DNA from: Mobula hypostoma
Taxonomy: Eukaryota
Direction: 5' to 3'
Assembly: GCF_963921235.1 (NCBI RefSeq)
Contig: NC_086106.1
Location: 25,048,001-25,112,000, forward strand
DNA: 64,000 bases
The notes beneath the pieces are model-generated. The model was given only the letters and a program-made list of their open reading frames with translations. It was not told the origin of the DNA and made no database searches. Shown piece after piece: positions 1-64,000 of the stretch. How positions within the stretch are numbered: the stretch's first letter is position 1; every line of letters begins with the position of its first letter. Position numbers and translations under genes: made by a program.

Positions 1-720
1 GCACTCGTCAACCTTCCTAGTAACATCTTCAAAAAGTTCAATAAGATTTGTCAAACATGACCTTTCACGCACAAATACCAATGAGAACTTGTCCATCCAG
101 ATAATTATATATACCATCTCGAAGAAAACATACATCAGTTTCCCCACCACTGACGTCAAACTCACAGGCCGACAATTGCGAGGTTTACTCCTAGAACCCT
201 ATCCACATGAGATTCATTTTTAAACAATGGAACAACATGAACAATATGCCAATCTTTCGGCACTATCCCAGATTCTAATGACATATGAAATACTTCTGTC
301 AGAACCCCTGCTATTTCCACAAAAACAAAATTTCCTCAGGGTCCGAGGGAATATCTTGCCTGGACCCGGAAACTTATCCAATTTTATATTCCTTAAAAGC
401 GCCAGTATTTCCTCTTCTTTAATCATTATAGTTACCATAACATCCCTAACTGTTTCCCTTCCCTTGCACAATTCAATATCCTTCTCCTTAGAGAATACCG
501 AAGAAAATAAATTGTTCAGAATCTCCCCCATCTCTTTTGGCTCCACACATAGCTGTCCACTCCGATTCTCTAAGGGACCAATTTTATCCCTGACTGTCTT
601 TTTGCTATTAATATAATTGTAGAAACCTTTGGGATTTATGTTCACATTACTTGCCAAAGCAAAATCATATATTCTTTTAGCTTTTCTAATTCATTTCTTA
701 AGTTTCTTTTTCCATTCTTA
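1..720 (-). mobile_element. CR1 LINE ORF2 fragment
   Basis: Minus ORF 220-657 (NPKGFYNYINSK..RDKIGPL..LNNLFSSVF..DKFPGP) is the CR1 linker/RT N-terminal region; same family as 10918-11940. Confidence 0.85.
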
Positions 721-3700
721 TATTCCTCGATTAGGTTCCGGGAAAAAAAATCAGATGTTAGTGGTTTCTGGGGTTGAGCAGTTCGAAGGGCTGGAGTGGG
801 TTATTCTGCGCTGCATCATGAAATAAACAACTAAATACACCTTGCAAGGAATCAAAACAACATTTACTCATGAAGACATATGGTACGTAAGTAGGTGCAT
901 AATCGATTGCCACCCAGACAACAATACTTAATATATTTCATTTTCTCTAGAAACACTCAAATTCCATTTTGACTTTTTTCGCTTCCAAACTGGGAATTTT
1001 AATTTAAACTCAGTGGCCAATTAGAACGTATTTTCGTAAACTGTTGCTTTTTAATAAGATGAGTTGAAAGCGTGTGGAAAGCAGTTTACAATTTATATTG
1101 CAAATACCAACTACTCACCAGTCATTTCGTGGGAAGGAGAATGGAACATCCTGGGAAATAGGTGACATCAGAAGCGAAGTGTTTACATCGATACTCTGCG
1201 ACTCTACAGCTCACATCAGGAATTACAGGAATCAAATAGCAATGAACTGGTCGAACTGGTCGTTAGCTAAGGAAAATATGCTTTCGAACCACAATGAGGA
1301 GCAAGCCTGCAGCCCGTTCTCACGTAGAAGAATCTTATTCTGGGAGAAATATCCCGAAGCCGGCCAAAGCTACTGTGGTGCCAATGAACAGGAAATCGGC
1401 TACTAGCTGCCAAAATAGATGGTTAGTGTTTAATGAGAAGAGGCCGCAGCAGTTTTGAGAAAAAAATCACTTGCCAATAGTTTCACAAAAACAGTGAGAG
1501 ATCAAACCATATGATACTGGTTAGTCCGAGGTTTTTCTGCAGCTATGACCCGTATTCAATTCGCACAGTTGCTTGAAAAGAGATTGCACTTTCTCCCCGG
1601 ACCACCTGGGACTTATGTCGGATGCTCCGGTCTGGTAGTATTTGATAGGCTGATTGGTCGTTCTAAATTATAGCGTGATTAGGTTAGGATTAAATCCGGT
1701 GATTGCCGCGCTGCGTACCTCGATGTGCAGAAAGGGCAAATTCCTCACTGTAGATCCAAACATAAATAAATAATCAATCAAGAAAACACACATAAGTAAA
1801 TAAATAAGAATCAGTTTCCCTTGCAAGTCTTATAGTCGGTACGAAGTCGGCATGAATTTGTATTTTTCAGAAATTTATCCAAAGCTAACGAATGACAAAT
1901 AATTTCAATTCAATGCTAACGCTATTTGTGTTTTTGCAGAAGCGATGAAACTGAATACAATGCATGCCGGGAGCTCCTTCAAAACTGCTTCGATTGGTTA
2001 ATCCGTCTCTGGTGAAAAGGTGAAACAACTTTTTTCTGCAACAACATATACTATTACACGTCCCTTATTTTGCCATATTTAAATTAATTTCTGTCCAGTG
2101 TTCACAGTGAAGGTGCAGGAGGGTGAGTGTGGTCATGGTGCAATTATTGCGTTACATTGGTGACAGTCCAAGTCATCCATCGTAAATCTGTTAATTGCAG
2201 GAAACGGTTGAGTTTGCGACAGGCTTTCGATTTCAAATTTCCTTCTTGATCTTACCTTTGTGTACGTGTTGAATGTTGAGCGCCGATTACATAATATGAA
2301 CAGAGGGATGCAATGAGAATATTGTCTTCTGAAATACCATTTTGAAAATTTCAGTAATGAAACGAAAAGTACCAGATCCACGATATTATTCGGAAGGAAT
2401 GTGATACTCCAGAGGGTACAGGTGATCAAGCAGTAAAGCTCGCCTGACTGGAAGTGCGAGTGACGGTCGATTTAAAGATCGCCTTGGAATCTTCCTGAAT
2501 AGTCTCATCCTCCTAGGGTAGTTGAGTCATTTTAGCAGTGGCAGAATGAGACGTAGTATCTGCTGAATTGTTTTAAACGCCATTACTTAGTTATTTGTTT
2601 GCTTGCTTGGTTACTTATCCTTCTCTCTTTATTTACGGAAATATCAGTCTGTTAGTCTGTGCCATAATTTGTTACTTTTTGTTTAATCTTTCTATTTATG
2701 TACTTAACATTCGTTTATGTCTTTATATATTTATCTATTTATGTTATTAATTTAGTAAGTGTGTTTCTTATTTGTTAATTATCCGATAATTATTTATTTA
2801 TGTATAATTTATTCCAAAGAGGAGGTAGTCTTTGAGTATAAAACCATACCATGTTGACCACAAAATTATAATTCATACACGCTCCCTTTTGGGTGTCTGG
2901 GGAACAGAAAAATTCTACTTGGTAGATCAAAGCCGCAAGTTACCTTAACTGTTTACTCAGAATTAACTTGAAGGCATTTTCCAGCACCGACACATTTTTC
3001 AAATTAAAAAAAAACACAGCAGAGGAAGAAATATAAGCTTACAGCATTTTGATGAAAATTAAATAATTCATTCTAAATCGAGGGAAATTATTCAGTACCA
3101 GACCGAGTTCAATTCACCTTTTGATACCTTATTTCATTGGACCGCTGTCATTTACTGATCCAAATATTTTGCCTGCTTGTTCATTGTCATAGATTAGATT
3201 AGATTAGATTAAACTTTATTGTTATTGTGCCGAGTACAGATACAAAGCCAATGAAATGCAGTTAGCATCTGACCAGAAATGGAAAGAATAGTGTTACTTA
3301 GAAAATAACTGCGAATTAAAAGTAAGTGCTGCAGCACACAAATATAAAAGTATTGAGACAGTACAATATGGGTACATTACTGCTTAGAGCTGTGATGTGA
3401 AGTTCAGCAGGGTCACAGCCTCAGGGAAGGAGCTCTTCCTGTGCCTCCCGCTGCGGGAGCTGAGTGTCCTGTAGCACCTACCGGATAGGGGGAGTGTAAA
3501 AAGTCCATGGTTAGGGTGAGATGCTTCCAGGATAATGCGTTTTGCCCTGCCCAGACAGCGTTTATGGTAAATACGCTCACTGGTGGGCAATTGGGTGCTG
3601 ATAATCCGCTGGGCAGTTTTCAGCACACGCAGGCGTGCTTTGCGGTCCGATATCAGACAATTGCCATACCACACAGAAATGTTATTGGTGAGTATTTTCT

Positions 3701-5040
3701 CAATGGTACTGGGGTAAAAATCCGTCAGTATCCAGGGGCAGAGTTGAGCTTCCTTGATGTTCCGCAGGAAATAAGGCGCTGTTGCGCCTTTTTGATCAGG
3801 ATGGCGGAGTTCAGGGACCAGCTGAGATCCTCGGAAATGTGGACACCAAGGAATGTGAAGCTTGAAACACGCTCCACTACAGATCCGATGGGGAGTGAGT
3901 GTGGCTCCTAGCATGCCTGAAGTCCACAATAATCTCCTTAGTGTTCTGGGTGTTGGCGGCCAGGTTGTTGTCGGCACACTACGCAGCCAGGTGCCGGACC
4001 TCCACCCTATAGGCCGTCTCGTCATCCTCTCTGATGAGGGGAAAAACCGTGGCGTCTTCCGCGAAGAACATTATGGAGTTAGGACCATGTACAGGAACGC
4101 AGTCATTGGTGAAAAGGGAGTACAGAAGAGGGCTCAGCACATAGCCTTGAAGCACGCCACTGCTAAAGGTGAGAGTGGAGGAGGAGAGGTTGTCTAACTT
4201 AACTGATTGTGGTCTGTTAGTCAGAAAGTCCATGGTCCAGTTACAGAGGGATGAGCTGATACGAAGCTGGCGAAGTTTGGCGATCAGCTTGGAGGGGATC
4301 ACAGTATTGAATGCAGAACTAAAGTCAATGAAGAGCATTCTGACGTAGGAGTCGTGTTTTTCCAAGTGCGTCAGGACAGAGTGGAATTCTTTGAAAATGG
4401 CGTCGTCTGTAGACCTGTTCGTGCAATAAGCAAATTGATGGGGGTCAAGGGTAGCGGGCAGACAGGATTTCAGATGTGATAGAACCAGTCTTTCAGGTCA
4501 CTATTCAATGATGCTGGTGAATGCAACTGGACGGAAGTCATTCAGGCCCGTGGCAGTGGAATGCTTTCGGCACTGACACGATCGTGACGTTCTTGAAGCT
4601 TGTAGGGACAACTGTCTGGGCCAGAAACAGATTAAAATGTCAGTGAAGACCTCTGCCAGCTGCTCTGCACAGACTCTGAACACACGGCCAGGTATTTCAC
4701 CCGGATCATTTGCCTTCCGTACGTTTACCCTGCTCAGTGTGGCGCAAACTTAGAAGTTGGAAAGTGAGAGAGGCAGTTCACCAGGTGAGAGATCCGCGTT
4801 GAAGGTGACCTCCTTCCTTTCTCGGTCAAAGCGTAGAAGTAATTGAGCTCATCATGGAGGGAAGTAGAGCTGGAAGGGGTCTCAGTACTAGGTGGTTTGA
4901 AGTCTCTAATGATCTGTATGCCATGCCACATGCGCCGGGGGTCCGAGGAATTGAAATATTCCTCGATTCTCTGCTTATATATGCGTTTAGCCTCAGAGAT
5001 TCTCCTCCTCAGGTTGGCCCTGGCTGAGCTGTAACCCTCC
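1..5040 (+). repeat. Tail of segmental-duplication copy 0 of the NAR-TCR unit
   Basis: 2-~1370 matches 43921-45272 almost base for base; ~355-4924 matches ~59430-64000 with more differences. The same CR1 and Rex insertions and unique spacer DNA recur. Confidence 0.92.
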
Positions 5041-17908: not shown

Positions 17909-18109
17909 NNNNNNNNNNNNNNNNNNNNNNNNNNNNNNNNNNNNNNNNNNNNNNNNNNNNNNNNNNNNNNNNNNNNNNNNNNNNNNNNNNNNNNNNNNNN
18001 NNNNNNNNNNNNNNNNNNNNNNNNNNNNNNNNNNNNNNNNNNNNNNNNNNNNNNNNNNNNNNNNNNNNNNNNNNNNNNNNNNNNNNNNNNNNNNNNNNNN
18101 NNNNNNNNN
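17909..18109. other. Assembly gap (~200 N)
   Basis: Run of N; a (GAA)-rich low-complexity stretch follows. Confidence 1.
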
Positions 18110-38580: not shown

Positions 38581-38623
38581 ATGGGAGTCTTCTTTGTTTT
38601 CACACTCTGGCTCTGCTTACGGC
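38581..38623 (+). CDS. NAR-TCR V leader exon, cassette A (MGVFFVFTLWLCLR, phase 1)
   Basis: ATG, hydrophobic core and C|GTGAGT donor; splices in frame to the acceptor at 38758. Identical in copy B. Confidence 0.93.
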
Positions 38624-38758
38624 GTGAGTACCTTCACACATCCACATTACATTTACGTTAAATCTGTCTGAGACCTCAGAGCTTCAACCGGCTTAAATTA
38701 TTCATGTGGTTCGTCTATGACTGCAATTCACATTTCTCCATATTTTTTTTATTCTTAG

Positions 38759-39052
38759 GTTCTTTGAGTCAGTCGGTGACTCAGAGCCCGTCCATTGTAA
38801 ACTTGAATGAGTGTCAGACTGCCACCATCACCTGCAGTTTCAAGCCTGGTTCGTTTGGTGAATATCGCTTTCTCACTGGAAAGTTCTTCAGGCAGACCAA
38901 CTCAGCGGCCGAACGCAAAGAAGTCACCCGCGGGGGGAGATTTTTTACTTTGATTAAGAAAACTAACATGCAGTTTTCTTTGGAAATTCGGGACCTGCGA
39001 GTGGAAGACAGCGGCACCTATTACTGTCAAGCTGTGTACAGATGGCGTGAAG
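38759..39052 (+). CDS. NTCRV: NAR-TCR V exon (IgNAR-like V), cassette A
   Basis: QSVTQSP..TITC..FFRQ..GGRF..FSLEIRDLRVEDSGTYYCQA. VNAR-like hallmarks: short FR2-CDR2 (47 residues from the Trp position to Cys2), GGR and DLRVEDSGTY. Extra FR1 Cys at 38812-38814; open frame; ends at an RSS. Confidence 0.95.
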
Positions 39053-39090
39053 CACAATGATGGGCTTCGGCTTTGTGCTGTACAAAAACT
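39053..39090 (+). other. V RSS (CACAATG - 22 bp - ACAAAAACT)
   Basis: Counted directly; functions as a 23-type RSS. Confidence 0.95.
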
Positions 39091-39832: not shown

Positions 39833-39929
39833 AGTTGTTGTATAGTGGAGACTGAGAACAGGATCATTGTGTATCAATGGGAGACTCAGACTCTAGATGG
39901 AAGAGGGACAAAGGTCACGGTCAGTCCCG
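39833..39929 (+). CDS. NTCRJ: NAR-TCR J segment A (coding 39872-39929, YQWETQTLDGRGTKVTVSP) with 23-RSS
   Basis: AGTTGTTGT-23-CATTGTG, GxGTxVTV motif and phase-1 donor G|GTAAGT. Confidence 0.93.
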
Positions 39930-40946
39930 GTAAGTATCCACAGACACCGACGATTCCTCAAATATCTCACCCATGTTCACTATCGTTTGATAGATGATCG
40001 ATTGATTTAAAATCTTGTGTGGTGTGATTCTGTAAACTGAATCTACACTCACTGCGTCGAAAGGCAAGGTGGTAAACTAAATTAACAGAGTGAGATGGAG
40101 AGGGGAATTTCTGCTATGAGTGAAGATGAAATGCTGGTGTAATCGTCGCAGAATAAATCCAACCGACTGATGTCAGACTGTGGGAAATACTGTTAGCAGC
40201 TTAAGACATAAACCGCAAGCAGATAAGATATATATATATGAAAATGTCACCGACATGCATGAAATAATGAATCTTGTTTTCTCCAACTTATTTTCAAATA
40301 GTACAGTGAAATGCAGAACCAAATGATGAAAAATAAGAAAAGAGAAGGGAAGCAAACTTTATATCGCCGCGTGCTGAACTCCAATTGAAAATAATATTAG
40401 CCTTCAGTTGCTTAGAAAATTATCCGACCAATCTGTCCCATTCAGTCTCTTTACTGTGAAGAACATGTTACAATGCAAGAGGCTGTAACTTATCGGGGAT
40501 ATATTATTTAAAAAAAGAAGCAATTCTGGATGGAGCCTCTATCAATTCGAAAAATAAAAAAGGCAAATCCATCATTATTCCGAATGAAACTGATGTTTAA
40601 AATAAACACCGAAGAACTTATATATAAAAAAAAGGAGTTCGGCCCATTTTATGATTGTAGGCCCTTTGCAATTGTTCCATGAATTTAGTTCTTCCTTCCA
40701 CATAGATGTCCAAAATATGAGACATCTTTTGATAATAGAAAGATATCTGCAATTTAGTATGAGTCCCTGATTTTATTTCACTGCAGCAATTCAGATAATA
40801 ATTGACAACGACAATAAATATTGTTTACTCGCATTTCAAATGAAACAAGATTGCGTGAAAGCAAAATCTCCTTAACGTATTTGGGACATGTTATTTTCTG
40901 ACAGTTATCGGTAAATCAGCAATAATTTTCCTTTACATTCATACAG

Positions 40947-41249
40947 AATCCATTGCTCCACCGTCTCAGAGTCCGGAACTACAAACTACACTTGCCGATA
41001 CTGCCATTTTAACCTGTGGATATGACGTGAATTGTCGCAACACAATACACTGGTATCGCCAGCTTCCAGGGCAGGCACCCATATTCCTGCTCCAGGGTCA
41101 AACTTCCGGAGTACAAGATAAGACAAAAAATGCCGGGGAACGAATTACTGGTTTTGTCGATCCTGGTAAGAAAATCAGCCAGCTGACGATCTCCAAAGTG
41201 CAACTGGGTGACGCTGCTGTGTATTACTGTGCAATGAGTCGGTTTGCAG
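40947..41249 (+). CDS. STCRDV: Leaderless supporting TCR-delta V exon, cassette A
   Basis: Pyrimidine tract and CAG acceptor in phase with J. ESIAPPSQ..ILTCGYDVNCRNTIHWYRQLPGQAP..LTISKVQLGDAAVYYCAM; extra CDR1 Cys at 41033-41035. No leader exon recognised between J and this exon. Confidence 0.94.
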
Positions 41250-41288
41250 CACTGTGATGCCGCGCATGGACAGCGCTGTTCAAGAACT
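41250..41288 (+). other. Proximal 23-RSS of supporting V, cassette A (CACTGTG-23-TCAAGAACT)
   Basis: Abuts the V coding end; spacer counted as 23. Confidence 0.9.
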
Positions 41289-41310
41289 AGGGTGATTCTC
41301 GTTACAAGCA

Positions 41311-41349
41311 CACAGTGCTAGGAAGCAGCGAGAGAACAATACAAAAACT
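41311..41349 (+). other. Second (distal) 23-RSS, cassette A (CACAGTG-23-ACAAAAACT)
   Basis: Consensus heptamer, exact 23-bp spacer and 8/9 nonamer; 22 bp after the first RSS ends. Confidence 0.9.
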
Positions 41350-41959
41350 CATTTGGTTTTATCATATAAATACACCACAGCCGAGCACGGAGACAACGGC
41401 AAGAAACCGCAGTGTGGTGGGATTTTATTAGAATGATAACATTAAAAAAAAGTACCACAATCAACACCCAAAATATGCTGGGAGAAATCGTAATGTCCTG
41501 ATGGAAGTTCTTGGTTCGAAACATCATTTCCATGGAAGTGGCCGGATCGACCGATTCCTTAAATTTCTACTTATAGAAGACACACAACTTTCAAGAATAT
41601 ATTCCTGGAGCAGAGAGGCATGATTGCCTTAAGGAAATTCGCATTTTAGATTTTTTCAGATCAGAAGGGCGTCAGGCATAGCAACAGAAGTGGGCAAATC
41701 AGCCTATCCATTGTGGCCCGCCATTCCATTATTATTGTTCCGTTTCCCAATACATTCTCCAGTATATCCATGTGGTACATGCAATCTACCAGCTATTTTT
41801 AATGAAGTAACATCGCAAATCCGTTTGCGCCGCGGGAACGTCGGCAGAAAAGTAACGGATATTGAAATGTTACAAATTCCAAACAATAAATGCGTAATCT
41901 ATTCTTTTGGAATTATACGGCATCACCAACTACAGGTATCATTACGATTCCAGAAACAT

Positions 41960-42785: not shown

Positions 42786-44620
42786 TCATATAACCATATA
42801 ACAATTACAATTCGGAAACAGGCCATCTCGGCCCTTTTAGTCCTTGCCGAACTCTTACTCTCAACTAATCCCACCACTTTAAACCACAACATCGAACTTG
42901 CTTCCACTACTTCAGCTGGAACCTCGTCTCACACAGCTACCACTCTCTGAGTAAAGAAGTTCTCCCCCATGTTACCCCAAAACTTTTGTCCGTTAACTCA
43001 CAACTCATGTCCTCTTGTTTGAATCTCCCCCACTCTCAAGAGAAAAATCCTATCCACGTCAACTCTATCTGTCCGCCTCCATAATTTTAAATACCTCTAT
43101 CAAGTCCCCCCTCAACCTTCTACGTTTCAAAGAATAAAGACCCACCTAATTCCACCTTTCTCTGTAACATAGGTGATTAAACCCAGGTAACATTCTCGTA
43201 AATCTTCTTTGCACTCTCCCGATTTTGTTGACATCTTTCATATAATTCGGTGACCAGAACTGTACACAATACTCCAAATTTGGCCTCTACCAATGCCTTG
43301 TAAAATTTCAACATTACGTCCCAACTCCGATACTCAATGCTCGGATTTAAAAAGGGCAGCATACGAAAAGCCTTCTTCACCACACTATGCACATGAGATT
43401 CCACCTTCAGGGATCTATGCACCATTATTCCTAGATCCCTCTGTTCTACATCATTCCTCAATGTCCTACCATTTACCATGTGCTTCCTATTTTGATTAGT
43501 ACTACCAAAATGTAGCACCTCACATTTATCAGCATTAAACTCCACCCGCCATCTTTCAGCCCACTCTTCTAACTGGCCTAAATCTCTTTGCAAGCTTTGA
43601 AAACCTACTTCATTATCCACAATCCAACCTATCTTCGTATCATCTGCATACTTACTCATCCAATTTACCACCATATCATCCAGATCATTAATGTATATGA
43701 CAAACAATATTGGAACCAGTACAGATCCCTAAGGCACACCACTAGTAACTGGCCTCCAATCTCACAAACAGTTATCCACCACTACTCTGTGGCGTCTTCC
43801 ATCCAGCCACTGTTCAATCGTTTTTACTACTGTAATATTATTATCTAACGATTCAACAAACCTAACTAACCTTCTGTGTGGAACCTTGTAAACGGCATAT
43901 AGACAACATACACCGCTTTTCACTCGTCAACCTTCCTAGTTACGTCTTCAAAAAGTTCAATAAGATTTGTCAAACATGACCTTTCACGCACAAATACTAA
44001 TGAGACCCTGTCCATTCAGATAATTATATATACCATCTCGAAGAATACATACATCAGTTTCCCCACCACTGACGTCAAACTCACAGGCCGACAATTGCGA
44101 GGTTTACTCCTAGAACCCTTTTTTAAACAATGGAACAACATGAGCAATACGCCAATCTTTCGGCACCATCCCAGTTTCTAATGACATATGAAATACTTCT
44201 GTCAGAACCCCTGCTATTTCCACAAAAAGAAACTTTCCTCAGGGTCCGAGGGAATATCTTGTCAGGACCCGGAAACTTATCCAATTTTATATTCCTTAAA
44301 AGCGCCAGTATTTCCTCTTCTTTAGTCATTATCGTTACCATAACATCCATAACTGTTTCCCTTACCTTGCACAATTCAATATCCTTCTCCTTAGAGAATA
44401 CCGAAGAAAATAAATTGTTCAGAATCTCCCCCATCTCTTTTGGCTCCACACATAGCTGTCCACTCTGATTCTCTAAGGGACCAATTTTATCCCTGACTGT
44501 CATTTTGCTGTTAATATAATTGTAGAAACCTTTGGGATTTATGTTCACATTACTTGCCAAAGCAAAATCATATATTCTTTTAGCTTTTCTAATTCATTTC
44601 TTAAGTTTCTTTTTCCATTC
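42786..44620 (-). mobile_element. CR1 ORF2, decayed with internal deletions
   Basis: Minus ORF 43177-43707 (YINDLD..KYADDTK..FNADKCEVLHFG); the tail GTTATATGGTTATATG is on the minus strand. Confidence 0.88.
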
Positions 44621-46140
44621 TTATATTCCTCGATTAGGTTCCGGAAAAAAAAAAAATAATCAGATGTCAGTGGTTTCTGGGGTTGAGCAGTTCGAAGGGC
44701 TGGAGTGGGGTATTCTGCGCTGCATCATGAAATAAACAACTAAATACACCTTGCAAGGAATTAAAACAACATTTACTCATGAAGACATACGGTACGTAAG
44801 TAGGTGCATAATCGATTGCCACCCAGACAGCAATACTTAATATATTTCATTTTCTGTAGAAACACTCAAATTCCATTTTGATTTTTTTCGCTTCCAAACT
44901 GGGAATTTTAATTTAAACTCAGTGGCCAATTAGAACGTATTTTCGTAAACTGTTGCTTTTTAATAAGATAAGTTGAAAGCGTGTGGAAAGCAGTTTACAA
45001 TTTATATTGCAAATACCAACTACTCACCAGTCATTTCGTGGGAAGGAGAATGGAACATCCTGGGAAATAGGTGACATCAGAAGCGAAGTGTTTACATCGA
45101 TACTCTGCGACTCTACAGCTCACATCAGGAATTACAGGAATCAAATAGCAATGAACTGGTCGAACTGGTCGTTAGCTAAGGAAGATATGCTTTCGAACCG
45201 CAATGAGGAGCAAGCCTGCAGCCCGTTCTCACGTAGAAGAATCTTATTCTGGGAGAAATATCCCGAAACCGGTGTGACGAGAATACACATAAAATTAAGA
45301 TGTTTGTTGGCCTAGGTTAGCATCAGTGACATCAGCAAGTGGTCTGCCACCTGCCCTCAGGGGAAGGAGAGATAAGGAACAATGGAGCAGCGTCTGGAGA
45401 TGTGTAATGAAGGGACGGGGGAAAGAGAGCTGTCTGGAGCTGCTCCCCCCCCTTTGAACCTTGAACTGTTTGAAGTGATGGACAGGCGATGCCCCAGCAG
45501 GGGGATAAAAAGGGACAGGTTCGCTAAGGCGGGACACACACACGCCACCCGAGGTAACGAGACCCTGGAAGCGGTGCGCCTCTCACGAGTGGGTGAGAAG
45601 TATCAGACAACGGCCAGGGTGGAAAGGTACGATCAGCGGGAACCCGGTGTGTGTCCGCCCTTGCCTGGGTGCCGGGTTCACTGCAGAGGATCGACTGCAT
45701 CTGGAGGAGGGGTCACAGTCGGTGACCTCAGGTGACATCACCATGGACCCGCCCAAAAGTTGCTTGTGAGCAATCTCGCCGGTCTGCGAGTGAAAGCGTT
45801 CTGAATGATCAGTTGTTCCTGTTCTATCTCTCTCTTCCCCCACGTTGTCCATCGCCATGGCAACGATTACTGCGAACTGAACTACTAACTGGACTGAACT
45901 TTGAGTCACTTTGAAATTTGGTCATTTACCCTAGACAACGATAGAGCTTGATTGATGCTGTTATCTTAATTCTGTGCACATGTGTGTTTATCATCGCTGA
46001 ACTGTTGCATTTATTATCCTTTCGATTACTGTGTTACTTGTTTCTTTAATAAAACTTTCTTAGTTCTAGTACTCCAGACTCCAACTGAGTGATCCATTTC
46101 TGCTGGTTTGGCAACCAAGTTACGGGGTACGTAACATAAG

Positions 46141-54248: not shown

Positions 54249-54286
54249 CACAATGATGGGCTTCGGCTTCGCGCTATACAAAAACT
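54249..54286 (+). other. V RSS (CACAATG-22-ACAAAAACT), cassette B
   Basis: Counted directly. Confidence 0.95.
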
Positions 54287-55132: not shown

Positions 55133-55425
55133 GTAAGTATCCAGAGACATCTACCATTCTTCAAATATCTCACCCATTTTCACTATCCTTTGATAGATGA
55201 TCGATTCGATTGATTTAAAATCTTGTGTTGTGATTCTGTAAACTGAATCTACACTCACCGTGTAGAAAGGCAAGGTGGTAAACTGAATTAACAGAGGGAG
55301 ATGAAGAGGGAAATTTCTGCAATGAGTAAGGATGAAATGCTCACAGAATGAATCCAACCGACTGCTGTCAGACTGTGGGAAAAATTGTTAGCAGCTTAAG
55401 GCATAACCCGCAAGCAGAATATATA

Positions 55426-56923
55426 ATTTTTCAAAACTCGTTAGATTCTGGACTAGTTCCTGGGGATTGGAGGGTGGCTAATGTAACCCCACTTTTTAAA
55501 AAAGGAGGGAGAGGGAAACCAGGGAATTATTGACCGGTTAGCCTAACGTCGGTGGTGGGGAAACTGCTGGAGTCAGTTATCAAAGATGTGATAACAGCAC
55601 ATTAGGAAAGCGGTGAAATTATCGGACAAAGTCAGCATGGATTTGTGAAAGGAAAATCATGTCTGACGAATCTCATAGAATTTTTTGAGGATGTAACTGG
55701 TAGAGTGGATAGGGGAGAACCAGTGGATGTGGTATATTTGGATTTTCAAAAGGCTTTTGACAAGGTCCCACACAGGAGATTAGTGTGCAAACTTAAAGCA
55801 CACGGTATTGGGGGTAAAGTATTGATGTGGATGGAGAATTGGTTAGCAGACAGGAAGCAAAGAGTGGGAATAAACGGGACCTTTTCAGAACGGCAGGCGG
55901 TGACTAGTGGGGTACCGCAAGGCTCAGTGCTGGTACCCCAGTTGTTTACAATACATATTAATGACTTGGATGGGAGAATTAAATGCAGCATCTCCAAGTT
56001 TGCGGATGACACGAAGCTGGGTGGCAGTGTTAGCTGTGAGGAGGATGCTAAGAGGATGCAGAGTGACTTGGATAGGATGCGTGAGTGGGCAAATTCATGG
56101 CAGATGCAATTTAATGTGGATAAATGTGAAGTTATCCACTTTGGTGGCAAAAATAGGAAAACAGATTATTATCTGAATGGTGGCCGATTAGGAAAAGGGG
56201 AGGTGCTACGAGACCTGGGTGTCATTATACACCAGTCATTGAAAGTGGGCATGCAGGTACAGCAGGCGGTGAAAAAGGCGAATGGTATGCTGGCATTTAT
56301 AGCGAGAGGATTCGAGTACAGGAGCAGGGAGGTACTACTGCAGTTGTACAAGGCCTTGGTGAGACCACACCTGGAGTATTGTGTGCAGTTGTGGTCCCCT
56401 AATCTGAGGAAAGACATCCTTGCCATAGAGGGAGTACAAGAAGGTTCACCAGATTGATTCCTGGGATGGCAGGACTTTCATATGAAGAAAGACTGGATGA
56501 ACTGGGCTTGTACTCGTTGGAATTTAGAAGTTTGAGGGGGGATCTGATTGAAACGTATAAAATCCTAAAGCGTATGGACAGGCTAGATGCAGGAAGATTG
56601 TTGCCGATGTTGGGGAAGTCCAGAACAAGGGGTCACAGTTTGAGGATAAAGGCGAAGCCTTTTAAGACCGAGATTAGGAAAAAAACTTCTTCACACAGAG
56701 AGTGGTGAATCTGTGGAATTCTCTGCCACAGGAAACAGTTGAGGCCAGTTCATTGGTTATATTTAAGAGGGAGTTAGATATGGCCCTTTTGGCTACGGGG
56801 ATCAGAGGGTATGGAGGGAAGGCTGGGGCGGGGTTCTGAGTTGGATGGTCAGCCATGATCATAATAAATGGCGGTGCAGGCTCGAAGGGCCGAATGGCCT
56901 ACCCCTGCACCTATTTTCTATGT

Positions 56924-56928
<5 letters not shown>
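55426..56928 (+). mobile_element. Relatively young 5'-truncated CR1 inserted in the J - supporting V intron of cassette B
   Basis: 270-aa RT ORF at 55645-56457 (YLDFQKAFDKVPH, GVPQGSVL, FADDTK). Absent from copy A; sits in a (TA)n tract. Confidence 0.92.
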
Positions 56929-56960
<32 letters not shown>

Positions 56961-57661: not shown

Positions 57662-57964
57662 AATCCATTTCTCCAGCGTCTCAGACTCCTGAACTGCAAA
57701 CTACACTTGCCGATACTGCCATTTTAACCTGTGGATATGACCTGTATTGTCGCAGCACAATACATTGGTATCGCCAGCTTCCAGGGCAGGCACCCATATT
57801 CCTGCTCCAGGGTCAAACTTTTGGAGCACAAGATAAGACAAAAAATGCCGGAGAACGAATTACTGGTTTAGTCGATCCTGGTAAGAAAATCAGCCAGCTG
57901 ACGATCTCCAAAGTGCAACTGGGTGACGCTGCTGTGTATTACTGTGCAATGAGTCGGTTTGCAG
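57662..57964 (+). CDS. STCRDV: Leaderless supporting TCR-delta V exon, cassette B
   Basis: 303 nt like copy A, open frame, CDR1 Cys at 57748-57750, 9 aa differences from A. Confidence 0.94.
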
Positions 57965-58003
57965 CACTGTGATGCCGCGCATGGACAGCGCTGTTCAAGA
58001 ACT
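57965..58003 (+). other. Proximal 23-RSS of supporting V, cassette B (CACTGTG-23-TCAAGAACT)
   Basis: Identical to copy A. Confidence 0.9.
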
Positions 58004-58025
58004 AGGGTGATTCTCGTTACAAGCA

Positions 58026-58064
58026 CACAGTGCGAGTTAGCAGCGAGAGAACAATACAAAAAGT
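58026..58064 (+). other. Second (distal) 23-RSS, cassette B (CACAGTG-23-ACAAAAAGT)
   Basis: Consensus heptamer and 23-bp spacer retained although the 5' part of the spacer differs from A. Confidence 0.87.
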
Positions 58065-58939: not shown

Positions 58940-59800
58940 AACAGTACGGAAACAGGCCATCTCGGCCCTTCTAGTCCGTGCCGGACTCTTACTCTCACCT
59001 AGTCCCACCGACCTGTACTAACCCCATAACTCTCCATTCCTTTCCTGCCAATATAACTGTACAGTTGAATTTTAAACCACAACATCGAACTTGCTTCAAC
59101 CACTTCTGCTGGAAGCTCGTCCCACACAGCTACCACTCTCGGAGTAAAGAGGTCCCCCCTTATGTTACCCAAAAACTTTTGCCCGTTTACTCTCAACACA
59201 TGTCCTCTTGTTTGAATCTCCCACACTCTCAATAGAAAAATCCTATACACGTCAACTCTATCTATCCGCCTCATAATTTTACATATCTCTACCCCTCAAA
59301 CTTCAACGTTTCAAAGAATAAAGACCCAAATCCTTCAACTTTTCTCTGTAACATACGTGATGAAACCCAGGTAACATTCTCGTAAATCTTCCCTGTACTC
59401 TCTCGATCTTGTTCTCGGTGTGAGAGAATATTTTGTCAGGACCCGGAAACTTATCCACTTGTATATTCCTTAAGAGCGCCAGTATTTCCTCGTCTTTAAT
59501 CATCATAGTTACCAGAACATCCCTACCTGTTTCCCTTACCTTACACAATTCAATATCCTTCTCCTCAGTGGTTACCGAGGAAAAGAATTTGTTCAGAATC
59601 TCCCCCATCTCTTTTGGCTCCACACATAGCTGTCCACTCTAATTCTCTAAGGGACCAATTTTATCCCTGACTATCCTTCTGCTATTAATATAACTGTAGA
59701 AACCTTTGGGATTTATGTTCACCTTACTTGCCAAAGCAAAGTCATATATTCTTTTAGCTTTTTTAATTCATTTCTTAAGATTCTTTTTCCTTCTTTATAT
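58940..59800 (-). mobile_element. CR1 ORF2 remnant (paralog of 42786-44620, further deleted)
   Basis: Minus ORFs 58999-59274 and 59303-59623; the latter is a fusion across an internal deletion. Confidence 0.8.
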
Positions 59801-62289
59801 TCCTCGATTAGGCTCCGGAAAAATCAGGGTTGTCAGTGGTTTCTGGGGTTGCGCAGTTCGAAGGGCTGGAGTGGGTTGTACTGCGCTGCATCATGAAATA
59901 AACAACTATATACACCTTGCAGGGAATTAAAACAACATTTACTAATGAAGACATATGGTACGTAAATAGGTGCATAATCGATTGCAAACAGACAACAGTA
60001 CTTAATGTATCTTATTTTCTCTAGAAACACTCAAATACCATTTTGAGTTTTTCGCTTCCAAACTGGGAATTTTATTTTAAACTCAATGGCCATTTAGAAC
60101 GTATTTTCGTAAACTGTTTATTTTTAATAAGATGAGTTGAAAGCGCGTGGAAAGCAATTCACAATTTAAATTGCAAATACCAACTACTCACCAGTCATTT
60201 CGTGGGAAGGAGAGTGAAACATCCTGGGAAATAGGTGATATCAGAAGCGAAGTGTTTACATCGATACTCTGCGACTCTACAGCTTACATCAGGAATCACA
60301 GGAATCAAAATGCAATGAACTGGTCGAACGCGTGTACGATCGTTAGTTAAGGAAGATATGCTTTCGAATCACAATGAGGAGCAAGCCTGCAGCCCGTTGT
60401 TACGAAGCAGAATCTTATTCTGGGAGAATTATCCCGAAGCCGGCAAAAGCTACTGTGGTGCCGATGAACAGGAAATCGGCTACAGGCTGCCAAAATAGAT
60501 GGTGAGTCTTTAATGAGGAGAGGCCGCAGTAGTTTTGAGAAAAGTTTCACTTGCCAATAGTTTCACAAAAAACAGTGAGAAATCAAAACGTGTGATACTG
60601 GTTAGTCCAAATTTTTTTCTGCATCTATGACCCGTATTCAATTCGCACCGTTGCTTGTAAAGAGATTGCACTTTCTCCCCGGACCACCTGGGATTCATGT
60701 CTGATCCTCTGGTTTTCTTTCAACAACCCGACGTCTGGTAATATTTAATAGGCTGATTGGTCGTTCTAAATTATAGCATTATTAGGTTAGGATTAGATCC
60801 GGTGTTTGCCGGGCTGCGTACCTCGATGTGCAGAAAGGGCAAATTCCTCACTGTGTATCCAAATATAAATAAATAATCAATCAAGAAAACAAACATAAGT
60901 AAATAAATAAGCATCGGTTTTCCCTGCAAATCTTACAGTGGGTGCGAAGTCGGCATGAATTTGTATTTTTAAGAAATTTATCCAAAGCTAACGAATGACA
61001 AATAATTTCAATTCAATGCTTACGCTATCTGTATTTTTGCAAAATCGATGAAACTGTACAGAATGCATGCCAGGAGCTCCTACAAAACTGCATCGATTGG
61101 TTAATCCCTCTCGCTGAAAAGATGTAACAAAAGTTCTCTACAACAACATATACTATTACACGTCCCTTATTTTGCCATTTTTAAATTAATTTCTGCCCAG
61201 TGTTCACAGTGAAGGTGCAGGAGGGTGAGTGTGGTCATGGTGCAATTTTTGCGTTACAGTCGCGACAGTCCAAGTCATGCATCGTAAATCTGTTAACTGC
61301 AGGAAACGGTTGAGTTTGCGACAGGCTTTCGATTTCAAATTTCCTTCTTGATCTTACCTTTGTGTACGTCTTGAATGTTGAGCGCCGATTACATAATATG
61401 AACAGAGGGATGCAATGAGAATATTGTCTTTTGAAAGATCATTTTGAAAATTTCAGTAATAAAACGAGAAAGTGCCAGATCCACGATATTATTCGGAAGG
61501 AATGTGATATTCCAGAGAGTACAGGTAATTAAGCAGTAAAGCTCGCCTGACTGGAAGTGCGAGTGACCGTCAATTTAAAGATCGGATTGGAATGTTCCTG
61601 AATAGTCTCATCCTCCTAGGATAGTTGAGTATTTATAGTAGTGGCAGAATGAGACGTAGTATCTGCTGAATTGTTTTAAACGCCATTACTTAGTTATTTG
61701 TTTGCTTCCTTGGTTACTTATCCTTTCCTCTTTATTTGCGGAACTATCAGTCTTCGTCTGTGCCATAATTTGTTACTTATTTTTTGAAAATATTTCTATT
61801 TATGTACTTAACATTCGTTTATGTGTTTATATATTTATCTATTTATGTTATTAATTCAGTAAGTGTGTTTCTTATTTGTTAATTAACTGATAATTATTTA
61901 TTTATGTATTATTTATTCCAACGAGGAGGTAGTCCTTCAGTATAAAACCATACCATGTTGACCAAAATTTATAATTCATACACGCTCCCTTTTCGGTGTC
62001 TCGGGAAGAGAAAAGTTCTACTTGGTAGATCAAAGCCGTAAGTTGCCTTAACTGTTTACTTAGAATTAACTTGAAGGCATTTTTGCAGCTGACCGACGGA
62101 TTTTTCAATAAAAAAAACACAGTAGCAGAAGAAATGTAAGCTTGCAGTATTTTGATGAAAATTTAAAAAGCCATTCTAAATCGAGGGAAATTATTCAGTT
62201 CCAGACTGAGTTCAATACACCATTTGATACCTTATTTCATTGGGCCGCTGTCATTTACTGATCCAAATATTTTCCCCGCTTGTTCGTTG

Positions 62290-64000
62290 TCATAGATTAG
62301 ATTAGATGTAACGTTATCGTCATTGTGCCTAGTACAGAAGCAAAGCCAATGAAATGCAGTTAGCATCTGACCAGAAATGCAAAGAATCGTGTTACTTAGA
62401 AAATAACTGCGAATAAAAAGAAAGTGCTACAGCTCACAAATATAAAAGTATTGAGACAGTGCAAAATGGGTGCATTCCTGCTTAGCGCTGTGATGTGAAG
62501 TTTACCGGGGGCACAGCCTCAGGGAAGAAGCTCTTCCTGTGCCTGCCGGTGCGGGAGCGGAGGGTCCTGTAGCGCCTACCGGATGGGAGGAGAGTAAAAA
62601 ATCCATGGTTAGGGTGAGATGCTTCCATGATAATGCCCTGCCCAGGCAGCGTTTATGGTAAATATGCTCAATGGTGTGCAAATGGGTGCTGATAATCCGC
62701 TGGGCAGTTTTCACCACACGCAGGCGTGCTTTGCGGTCCGATACTAGACAATTGCCATATGTTCTCAATGTATGTTCTCAATGGTATGGGGGTAAAAGTC
62801 CGTCAGTATCCAGGGGCAGATTTGAGCTTCCTTGATGCTCCGCAGGAAATAAGGCGCTGTTGTGCCTTTTTGATCAGGATGGAGGAGTTCAGGGACCAGC
62901 TGAGATCCTCGGAAATGTGGAAACCAAGGAATTTGAAGCTTGATACACGCTCCACTACAGATCCGATGGGGAGGTGAGTGTGGCTCCTAGCATGCCTGAA
63001 GTCCACAATGATCTCCTTAGTCTTCTGGGTGTTGAGGGCCAGGATGTTGTCGGCACACTACGCAGCCAGTTGCCGGAACTTGTCCCTGTAGGCCGTCTCG
63101 GCATCCTCTCTGATCAGGGCAATCAACGTGGCGTCTTCTGCGAACTAGATTATGGAGTTAGGACCATGTACAAGAACGCAGTCATTGGGGAAAAGGCAGT
63201 ACAGATGAGGGCTCAGCACATAGCCTTGAAGCACGCCAGTGTTCAAGGTGAGAGTGGAGGAGGAGAGGTTGTCTAATTTAACTGATTGGGGTCTGTTAAT
63301 TGGAAAGTCCATGGTCCAGTTACAGAGGGATGAGTTGATACGATGCTGGCAAAGTTTGGCCATCAGCTTGGAGGGGATCACAGTATTGAATGCAGAACTA
63401 AAGTCAATAAACAGCATTCTGACGCAGGAGTCGTGGCTTTCCAGGTGCGTGAGGACAGAGTGAAAAGCTTTGGAGATAGCGTCCTCTGTAGACCTGTTGT
63501 GCAATAGGCAAATTGATGGGGGTCCAGGGTAATCGGTAGACAGCATTTCAGATGTGATATAACCAGTCTGTCAAATAACTTTTCAATGATGAGGGTGAGT
63601 GCAACTGGACGGAAGTCATTCAGGCCTGTGGCAATGCAATGCTTTCGGCACTGGCACGATGGTGACGATCCTGAAGCTTGTAGGGACAACTGCCTGGGAC
63701 AGGAACAGATTAAAATGTCCATGAAGACCCCGGCCAGCTGGCCTGAACAGACTCTGAGCTCATGGCCAGGTTTTCCATCCGAACCAGTTGCCTTCCGTAC
63801 GTTCACCCTGCTCAGTGTGGCGCAAACTTAGAAGGTGGAAAGTCAGAGAGGCAGTTCTCCAAGTGGGAGATCCGCTTTGAAGGTGACCTCCTTCTTTTGT
63901 CGATCAAAGCGTAGAAGTAATTGAGCTCATCAGGGAGGGAAGTAGAGCTGGACGGGGCTCAGTACTAGGTGGTTTGAAGTCTGTAATGATCTGTATGCCA
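62290..64000 (-). mobile_element. Rex1/Babar LINE (paralog of 3190-5065)
   Basis: [21 protein letters not shown]; DPHQFAY; same insertion point as in copy 0. Confidence 0.85.

Follow-up and report, generated by a model that had tools for sequence, protein, structure and literature searches.

Which of two RSSs standing in tandem behind a single V segment is used in rearrangement, and what might the other one do? The question is raised by the supporting TCR-delta V of two NAR-TCR cassettes of a ray, A and B, in a 64-kb window (by which we mean the whole stretch of DNA analysed, 64,000 nucleotides). Behind this V lie two 23-RSSs, of which the one farther from the coding end matches the consensus better.

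The NAR-TCR cassettes and their tandem signals

The NAR-TCR is a doubly rearranging delta chain (Criscitiello et al. 2006; its features are restated in PMC1845163 and PMC3457774), and the features of the NAR-TcR V and its associated delta V, among them the absence of a leader and the presence of a CDR1 cysteine in the latter, are given in PMC1845163. The window has the same arrangement of leader, NAR V, D, J, and leaderless supporting V-delta with a CDR1 cysteine, and the same two separate rearrangements, seen here in DNA and in RNA contigs. An RSS scan of the window placed the signals for NAR V-D-J rearrangement at 39053, 39456, and 39871 in cassette A and at 54249, 54657, and 55074 in cassette B. 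The NAR J segment of cassette A occupies positions 39872 to 39928 (plus strand), its 3' end being the splice donor to the supporting V, and the 23-RSS assigned to it by the scan runs from 39871 to 39833 on the minus strand. Translation of the NAR V (…VNLNECQTATITC…GKFFRQ…) showed the cysteine of the a-b loop, whereas the Trp of the WYRK motif is missing.

As RNA evidence we used assembler contigs from public runs of the same organism; four RNA runs were aligned. The leader intron of the NAR V was removed from 38623 to 38759 in these contigs, the NAR V-(D)-J joints linked 39045-39050 to 39873-39883 through non-germline letters, and a GT..AG splice, present in contigs from two runs, connected the NAR J at 39928 with the supporting V at 40946/7. 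The supporting V exon of cassette A (40947 to 41249, plus strand; protein …GYDVNCRNTIHWYRQ…YYCAMSRFA) is directly preceded by an AG acceptor at 40945-40946 and has no leader, and translation revealed a cysteine in its CDR1 in both cassettes (CGYDVNCRNTIHWY in A and CGYDLYCRSTIHWY in B). The J-to-V splice, the NAR V-(D)-J joins in RNA, and the CDR1 cysteine together confirmed the original prediction that this exon is the leaderless supporting V-delta of a NAR-TCR cassette. Its closest protein matches were avian TCR alpha/delta V segments (PF07686); the protein search, which was meant to reach the loci of other species, returned bird TCR V segments only.

The coding end of the supporting V in cassette A reads ...TAT TAC TGT GCA ATG AGT CGG TTT GCA G, with its last base at 41249. 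It is followed by the proximal 23-RSS (CACTGTG-23-TCAAGAACT, 41250 to 41288, plus strand), which was recognized from the sequence and from RNA contig breakpoints and consists of a heptamer at 41250-41256, a 23-nt spacer at 41257-41279, and a nonamer at 41280-41288. Between the proximal nonamer and the next heptamer there is a 22-bp insert, read from the sequence and given no strand (41289 to 41310), and then comes the near-consensus distal 23-RSS (CACAGTG-23-ACAAAAACT, 41311 to 41349, plus strand), with its heptamer at 41311-41317, its 23-nt spacer at 41318-41340, its nonamer at 41341-41349, and no coding segment abutting it. Both are signals with a 23-bp spacer, both have the same orientation, and their heptamers are 61 bp apart. 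When the V frame is extended past the coding end it reads GCA CTG TGA, so that the last two bases of the proximal heptamer and the first base of its spacer form an in-frame TGA at 41255-41257 (plus strand), and the V-frame ORF ends at 41257. The distal heptamer is preceded by the insert and by the entire proximal RSS, with this TGA in the V frame; the claim that a distal join would keep both the in-frame stop and an intact proximal RSS could thus be read from the sequence and from the ORF end.

In cassette B the supporting V exon (57662 to 57964, plus strand), located by a gap-free alignment at a constant offset of 16715 and by translation, is followed by a proximal 23-RSS (57965 to 58003, plus strand) and a 22-bp insert (58004 to 58025, likewise given no strand), both identical to the copies in cassette A, and by a distal 23-RSS (CACAGTG-23-ACAAAAAGT, 58026 to 58064, plus strand) that differs from that of A by three changes in the spacer and one in the nonamer. 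The predicted tandem double 23-RSS behind the V was therefore found with every element in its place in cassette A, and cassette B repeats both the layout and the spacings.

The two cassettes are 87-90% identical overall. The J-to-supporting-V intron of cassette B contains a 1527-bp insertion (55419-56945), located at a (TA)n microsatellite and absent from cassette A; it includes an open frame of 283 aa in which reverse-transcriptase motifs occur (YLDFQKAFDKVPH…FADDTKL), and a 5'-truncated LINE is its most likely identity. The cassettes are flanked by large direct repeats of 90-96% identity (2-4923, 43921-45272, and 59422-64000); these suggest that the duplication unit measures about 15-16 kb and that a further unit is partly present at the start of the window. 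A run of 201 N at 17909-18109 represents either an assembly gap or a masked stretch.

Quality, use, and conservation of the two signals

In the RSS test, CAC and a 23-nt spacer were required, both strands were scored against CACAGTG/ACAAAAACC, and the counts were compared with those from 100 block shuffles of the window. When no more than one mismatch was allowed, a single site was found in the 64-kb window, the distal RSS of cassette A, against 0 expected from the shuffles; when two were allowed there were two sites, the distal RSSs of both cassettes, against 0.01 expected. With its perfect heptamer, exact 23-nt spacer, and 8/9 nonamer, that is, one mismatch in 16 positions, the distal RSS of cassette A (41311-41349) was the best 23-RSS match in the window. 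A separate shuffle control gave five matches with no more than three mismatches against 0.93 expected. At four mismatches, the number found in the proximal RSS, chance alone gives about 1.9 sites per window; because such motifs arise by chance, the proximal RSS is identified instead by its position at the V end in both cassettes together with the RNA breakpoints. We concluded from these results that the tandem signal is real and is not a product of chance.

By consensus match the distal signal is the stronger of the two, as had been predicted (one mismatch versus four). The heptamer (CACTGTG) and the 23-nt spacer of the proximal signal fit, and its nonamer, TCAAGAACT, matches at six of nine positions, with a G at position 5. 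Working nonamers are reported to follow a purine-A/T-purine rule at positions 4-6 (PMC12711392); the distal nonamer obeys this rule, whereas the proximal nonamer, which reads A-G-A there, does not. The G at position 5 is present in the proximal nonamers of both cassettes (TCAAGAACT) and in a contig from another organism, E (ACAAGAACC), though the signal is used, and the proximal nonamer represents a conserved departure from the A-tract in a working signal.

Evidence on which signal is used came from two RNA contigs that cross the V end. In contig X5 the V was germline to 41249, without trimming, and was followed by AGATCTATAACACCAAGGAAACTAAACTCA; in contig X12 (1724 nt) it was germline to 41244, with 5 nt trimmed, and was followed by CAAGGAAACTAAACTCATTTTTGCAAATGG. 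Hand translation placed both in frame with the V (…CAMSRFAEIYNTKETKL… and …CAMSRFKETKLIFANG, respectively), and both contigs, which came from two RNA runs, entered a common J-like sequence ending …AAACTCATTTTTGCAAATGG. The two expressed joins had either no letters between V and J or 13 (AGATCTATAACAC), and neither resembled the 22-bp insert. As the V ends of the cassettes are identical, contigs that include the V end may stem from paralogous cassettes; X12 carries T>A at 41155, a marker of cassette B, and was therefore assigned to a paralogue with an identical V end. Since X5 and X12 leave the germline at the proximal border and in frame, the proximal signal, the one with the poorer nonamer, makes the expressed, productive joins. 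The expressed J, which lies outside the window, reads …TKETKLIFANG and has an F-A-N-G motif rather than the usual F-G-x-G.

No RNA contig supported a join at the distal signal. Contig depth over 41282-41700 was zero in all four RNA runs, sampled 31-mers of 41235-41365 were found in no RNA run, and the contigs contained neither coding joints retaining the canonical RSS nor reciprocal signal joints. As rare variants are lost from assembler contigs and sterile transcripts undergo degradation, the missing distal-join RNA is weak evidence; it argues, weakly, against abundant distal-join transcripts only and is silent on events at the DNA level.

The signal pair and its spacing are shared by both cassettes, and DNA contigs of other organisms contain the pair as well. 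DNA contigs of four other organisms (B, C, D, and E) were aligned at a likeness of at least 80%. Those of organisms B, C, and E bridge both signals, the pieces from B and E having gaps that are not necessarily within the signals. Organism C provided a gap-free piece covering 41188-41426 with eight differences, and organism D a gap-free piece covering 41259-41396 with five differences, from which the first 9 nt of the proximal signal are missing. The contig of organism E reads AGCGCTGT ACAAGAACC AGGGTGCGTGTGC and then matches the germline from 41302; the length of its insert, 22 nt, is kept while the middle of the insert differs, and its proximal nonamer, ACAAGAACC, is a better one. An A>C change at 41295 was present in organisms B, D, and E, and a paired +1/-1 change at 41321/41325 leaves the distal spacer at 23. 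Among the 40 best-supported differences, which were distributed over 1101 nt, one (that at 41295) fell within 41210-41378, where about six were expected. The fraction of exact 31-mers shared with organism B was 0.67 in the 131-nt signal stretch versus 0.41 in the surrounding 601 nt, and for organisms C and E it was 0.33 versus 0.08-0.14 (a comparison based on six sampled words only); the conserved block extends about 30 bp past the distal nonamer. As cartilaginous-fish genomes reportedly evolve slowly (PMC12227049), conservation between species is less telling than it might otherwise be.

In 50-nt bins the A-B differences amounted to about 12-14% in the intron and about 5% in the V exon; they were absent from a block of 163 nt (41156-41318 in A versus 57871-58033 in B) that takes in FR3 as well as the proximal signal, the insert, and the distal heptamer. 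The four differences that come after this block all belong to the distal signal, three to its spacer (41319, 41322, and 41323) and one to its nonamer (41348, C to G). Because silent sites in FR3 are unchanged too, this block, centred on the V end and the signals, is likely to be a gene-conversion tract rather than a product of site-specific selection. The distal signal, with no change in the heptamer, one in the nonamer, and three in the spacer, was similar to the NAR V, D, and J signals, in which the heptamers were unchanged between A and B, the nonamers had 0-1 changes, and the spacers 0-3. One change was seen at the 16 motif positions of the distal signal against about 1.9 expected, a number of positions too small for the A-B comparison to separate constraint from neutrality.

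Origin and possible role of the distal signal

The original prediction saw in the insert a loose resemblance to a collapsed FR3 end, suggestive of an old local duplication. This part of the prediction was not supported: the likeness between the insert and FR3 was at the level of chance (p 0.46-0.64), as was that between the spacers (p 0.6). When a local duplication was sought by comparing the insert with the last 50-60 nt of the V, and the spacers with each other and with the NAR V spacer, none of the comparisons beat its shuffles (p 0.13-0.64). The sole stretch common to the insert and the end of FR3, GGGTGA, was reached by about half of the shuffled inserts. As the two signals have no detectable homology outside their motifs, they either have separate origins or arose by a duplication so old that only the motifs remain; a very old duplication with all else randomised would imply that both motifs have been maintained.

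Other derivations of the region were also rejected. An inverted copy of FR3 was suggested by a 20-nt pair (41212-41231 and 41311-41330) that is 75% complementary, which is within chance by a rough estimate that takes into account the position pairs tried, and a 9-nt perfect inverted pair (41248-41256 and 41311-41319) contains little beyond the heptamers, which are reverse complements of each other. The prediction that the insert is no D segment was borne out, in that there is no credible 5' signal between the proximal nonamer and the distal heptamer; no 5' RSS fits within the 22 bp, and the expressed joins have no insert-like letters. A decayed J behind the V was considered on account of a 10-mer, AAACTCATTT, common to the distal nonamer region and the expressed J; it is accompanied by neither a J motif nor a J frame and was regarded as a coincidence. 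With CCASYAGRKGGCRS as the CTCF core and no more than two mismatches allowed, there was no match near the V of either cassette; elsewhere in the window there were four CTCF-like matches against 6.9 expected. A degenerate proximal-nonamer pattern, sought in metagenome contigs, gave a single match (L001, 748-769); it lies in a GC-rich contig whose sequence around the match is unlike this locus, and it was attributed to chance.

Of the readings considered, we favor, tentatively, the one in which the distal signal is a RAG-competent competitor whose joins would be sterile but would leave the V able to rearrange again. The near-consensus distal signal would also be a RAG substrate and would compete with the proximal signal for the same 12-RSS partners. 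Cleavage at 41310/41311 would leave the proximal signal in its entirety, together with the 22-bp insert, in the coding joint, which would always be sterile because of the in-frame TGA at 41255-41257. The joint would retain an intact 23-RSS flush with the V, so that a second rearrangement of this V, to a 12-RSS lying further downstream, would be possible. On balance, joining of the supporting V would be throttled and a retry allowed. The choice and order of segments are controlled in cis mainly by the strength and position of their RSSs, and the stronger signal is placed here where only a sterile, redoable join would be possible. If RAG cuts the distal signal, the locus would offer a natural, conserved competition substrate for the choice of RAG between adjacent signals and would test a built-in retry or throttle in the doubly rearranging NAR-TCR. 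If RAG never cuts it, this would mean that an RSS close to the consensus is passed over in vivo although an active one lies 61 bp away, a result that would bear on the prediction of off-target sites.

Second in our order of preference, possible but on the whole unlikely, is that the distal signal is a silent relic, either the former RSS of the V or the product of an old insertion or duplication, which RAG rarely or never cuts in vivo; it would persist because of slow genome change and because gene conversion homogenises the cassettes. The stretch between the signals is in no RNA contig, as such a relic would have it, and the 163-nt identical block suggests conversion over motif-specific constraint. 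Such A-B changes as exist fall in the distal signal, and one of them weakens the nonamer of cassette B (ACAAAAAGT). Nevertheless, a 23-RSS with one mismatch, located 22 bp from an accessible and used RSS, would be expected to bind RAG, and, in the case of an old duplication, a near-perfect heptamer and nonamer would have had to survive the randomisation of all the rest. The persistence of the spacing and of both motifs in several organisms also argues against a relic.

To our knowledge, the coordination of the two NAR-TCR rearrangements is unexplained. A more speculative reading sees in the tandem signals a selected two-step device of a receptor that needs two rearrangements per chromosome, with a sterile distal join first and a productive proximal join second. 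In such a device the strong distal signal would be used first, giving a sterile placeholder join with the V still armed, and the weak proximal signal would then join productively to a remaining downstream 12-RSS, so that the supporting-V join would be paced, or coupled to NAR V-D-J joining, and each cassette would have another attempt. This reading we consider improbable.

It is improbable, in our estimate, that the distal signal is a helper element, which would not be a recombination site itself but would raise the use of the weak proximal signal by recruiting RAG or through exclusion of nucleosomes by its A-rich nonamer. The proximal nonamer, with its G at position 5, is indeed poor and yet the proximal signal is productive, the conserved block reaches about 30 bp beyond the distal nonamer, and nonamers are reported to act partly via nucleosome repulsion (PMC12711392). 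Exclusion of nucleosomes, however, needs neither a complete heptamer nor an exact 23-nt spacer, and a RAG complex bound at the distal signal would more likely block than help a proximal signal 61 bp away; the helper role, moreover, is a purely inferential one.

We would give no greater probability to a role as deleting element or decoy, comparable to delta-Rec or the kappa-deleting element, in which the distal signal would pair preferentially with a particular downstream 12-RSS and thereby inactivate the cassette or remove downstream delta segments. In favor of this role, the distal signal is a strong RSS without an abutting coding segment, and all of its joins would be sterile; but no partner is known, and since an ordinary V signal that agrees with it in type and orientation lies 61 bp away, nothing extra would be deleted. 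A misreading of the anatomy, in which the distal heptamer would belong to a D-like mini-segment or to an inverted 12-RSS and there would be no 23-RSS tandem, is very improbable: the inverted candidate on the minus strand (CACTGTG-11-AGAATCACC, 41317 to 41291), although it scored 6/7 and 6/9 in both cassettes, has a spacer of 11 nt and a nonamer that has no A-tract and whose bases vary between organisms (41295 A>C; GGTGCGTGT in organism E), the 5' side of the insert fits no 12-RSS, and the plus-strand reading has the perfect heptamer, the exact 23-nt spacer, and the 8/9 nonamer.

Comparison with known systems

Delta-Rec/psi-J-alpha and the kappa-deleting element are isolated RSSs that delete a locus, their joins removing the constant region. 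The distal signal resembles them in being an RSS without a coding segment of its own whose joins would make no product; they are, however, single dedicated sites, not one per V, whereas the distal signal occurs once per cassette, 61 bp behind the signal of the V. In VH replacement the embedded heptamer in FR3 lies inside the V, has the opposite orientation and no good nonamer, and is used to replace the V. It has in common with the window pair that a second RAG target linked to the V would allow further rearrangement after a first join; unlike in VH replacement, the spare signal left behind by a distal join would be the proximal RSS of the V itself.

The NAR-TCR as presented in PMC1845163 and PMC3457774 differs from the window in that these papers mention no second RSS behind the supporting V. 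In the literature searched, which did not include the founding paper of 2006, we found no description of a tandem RSS behind this segment. The closest counterparts are the alternative RSSs located beyond the canonical one, with the canonical RSS kept in the coding joint, of mouse TRBJ1-7 and TRBJ1-2 (Mika et al. 2019, PMC6857471). The alternative signal of TRBJ1-7 is 39 nt away and is the sole signal used there, that of TRBJ1-2 is at about 31 nt, and human TRGVB has candidate alternative signals 15 and 27 nt behind it (PMC6857471). As in the window, there is, a few tens of bp past the canonical signal, a second one that agrees with it in type and orientation, the whole canonical RSS enters the coding joint, as we predict for a distal join here, and the two signals of the TRBJ1-7 pair, like those of the window pair, have almost nothing in common outside the start of the heptamer. 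In contrast, the alternative RSSs of PMC6857471 are sporadic, belong to individual segments that are often pseudogenes or ORFs, and have signals that score poorly, whereas the arrangement in the window recurs in both cassettes and in several organisms and its outer signal, close to the consensus, surpasses the inner one in strength. Use of the outer signal is documented in mouse TRBJ1-7 and TRBJ1-2 (PMC6857471), whereas use of the distal signal in the window is something we infer. The best reading of the window pair, we propose, is as a conserved variant of the alternative-RSS phenomenon, in which the distal signal would presumably function as an additional RAG target.
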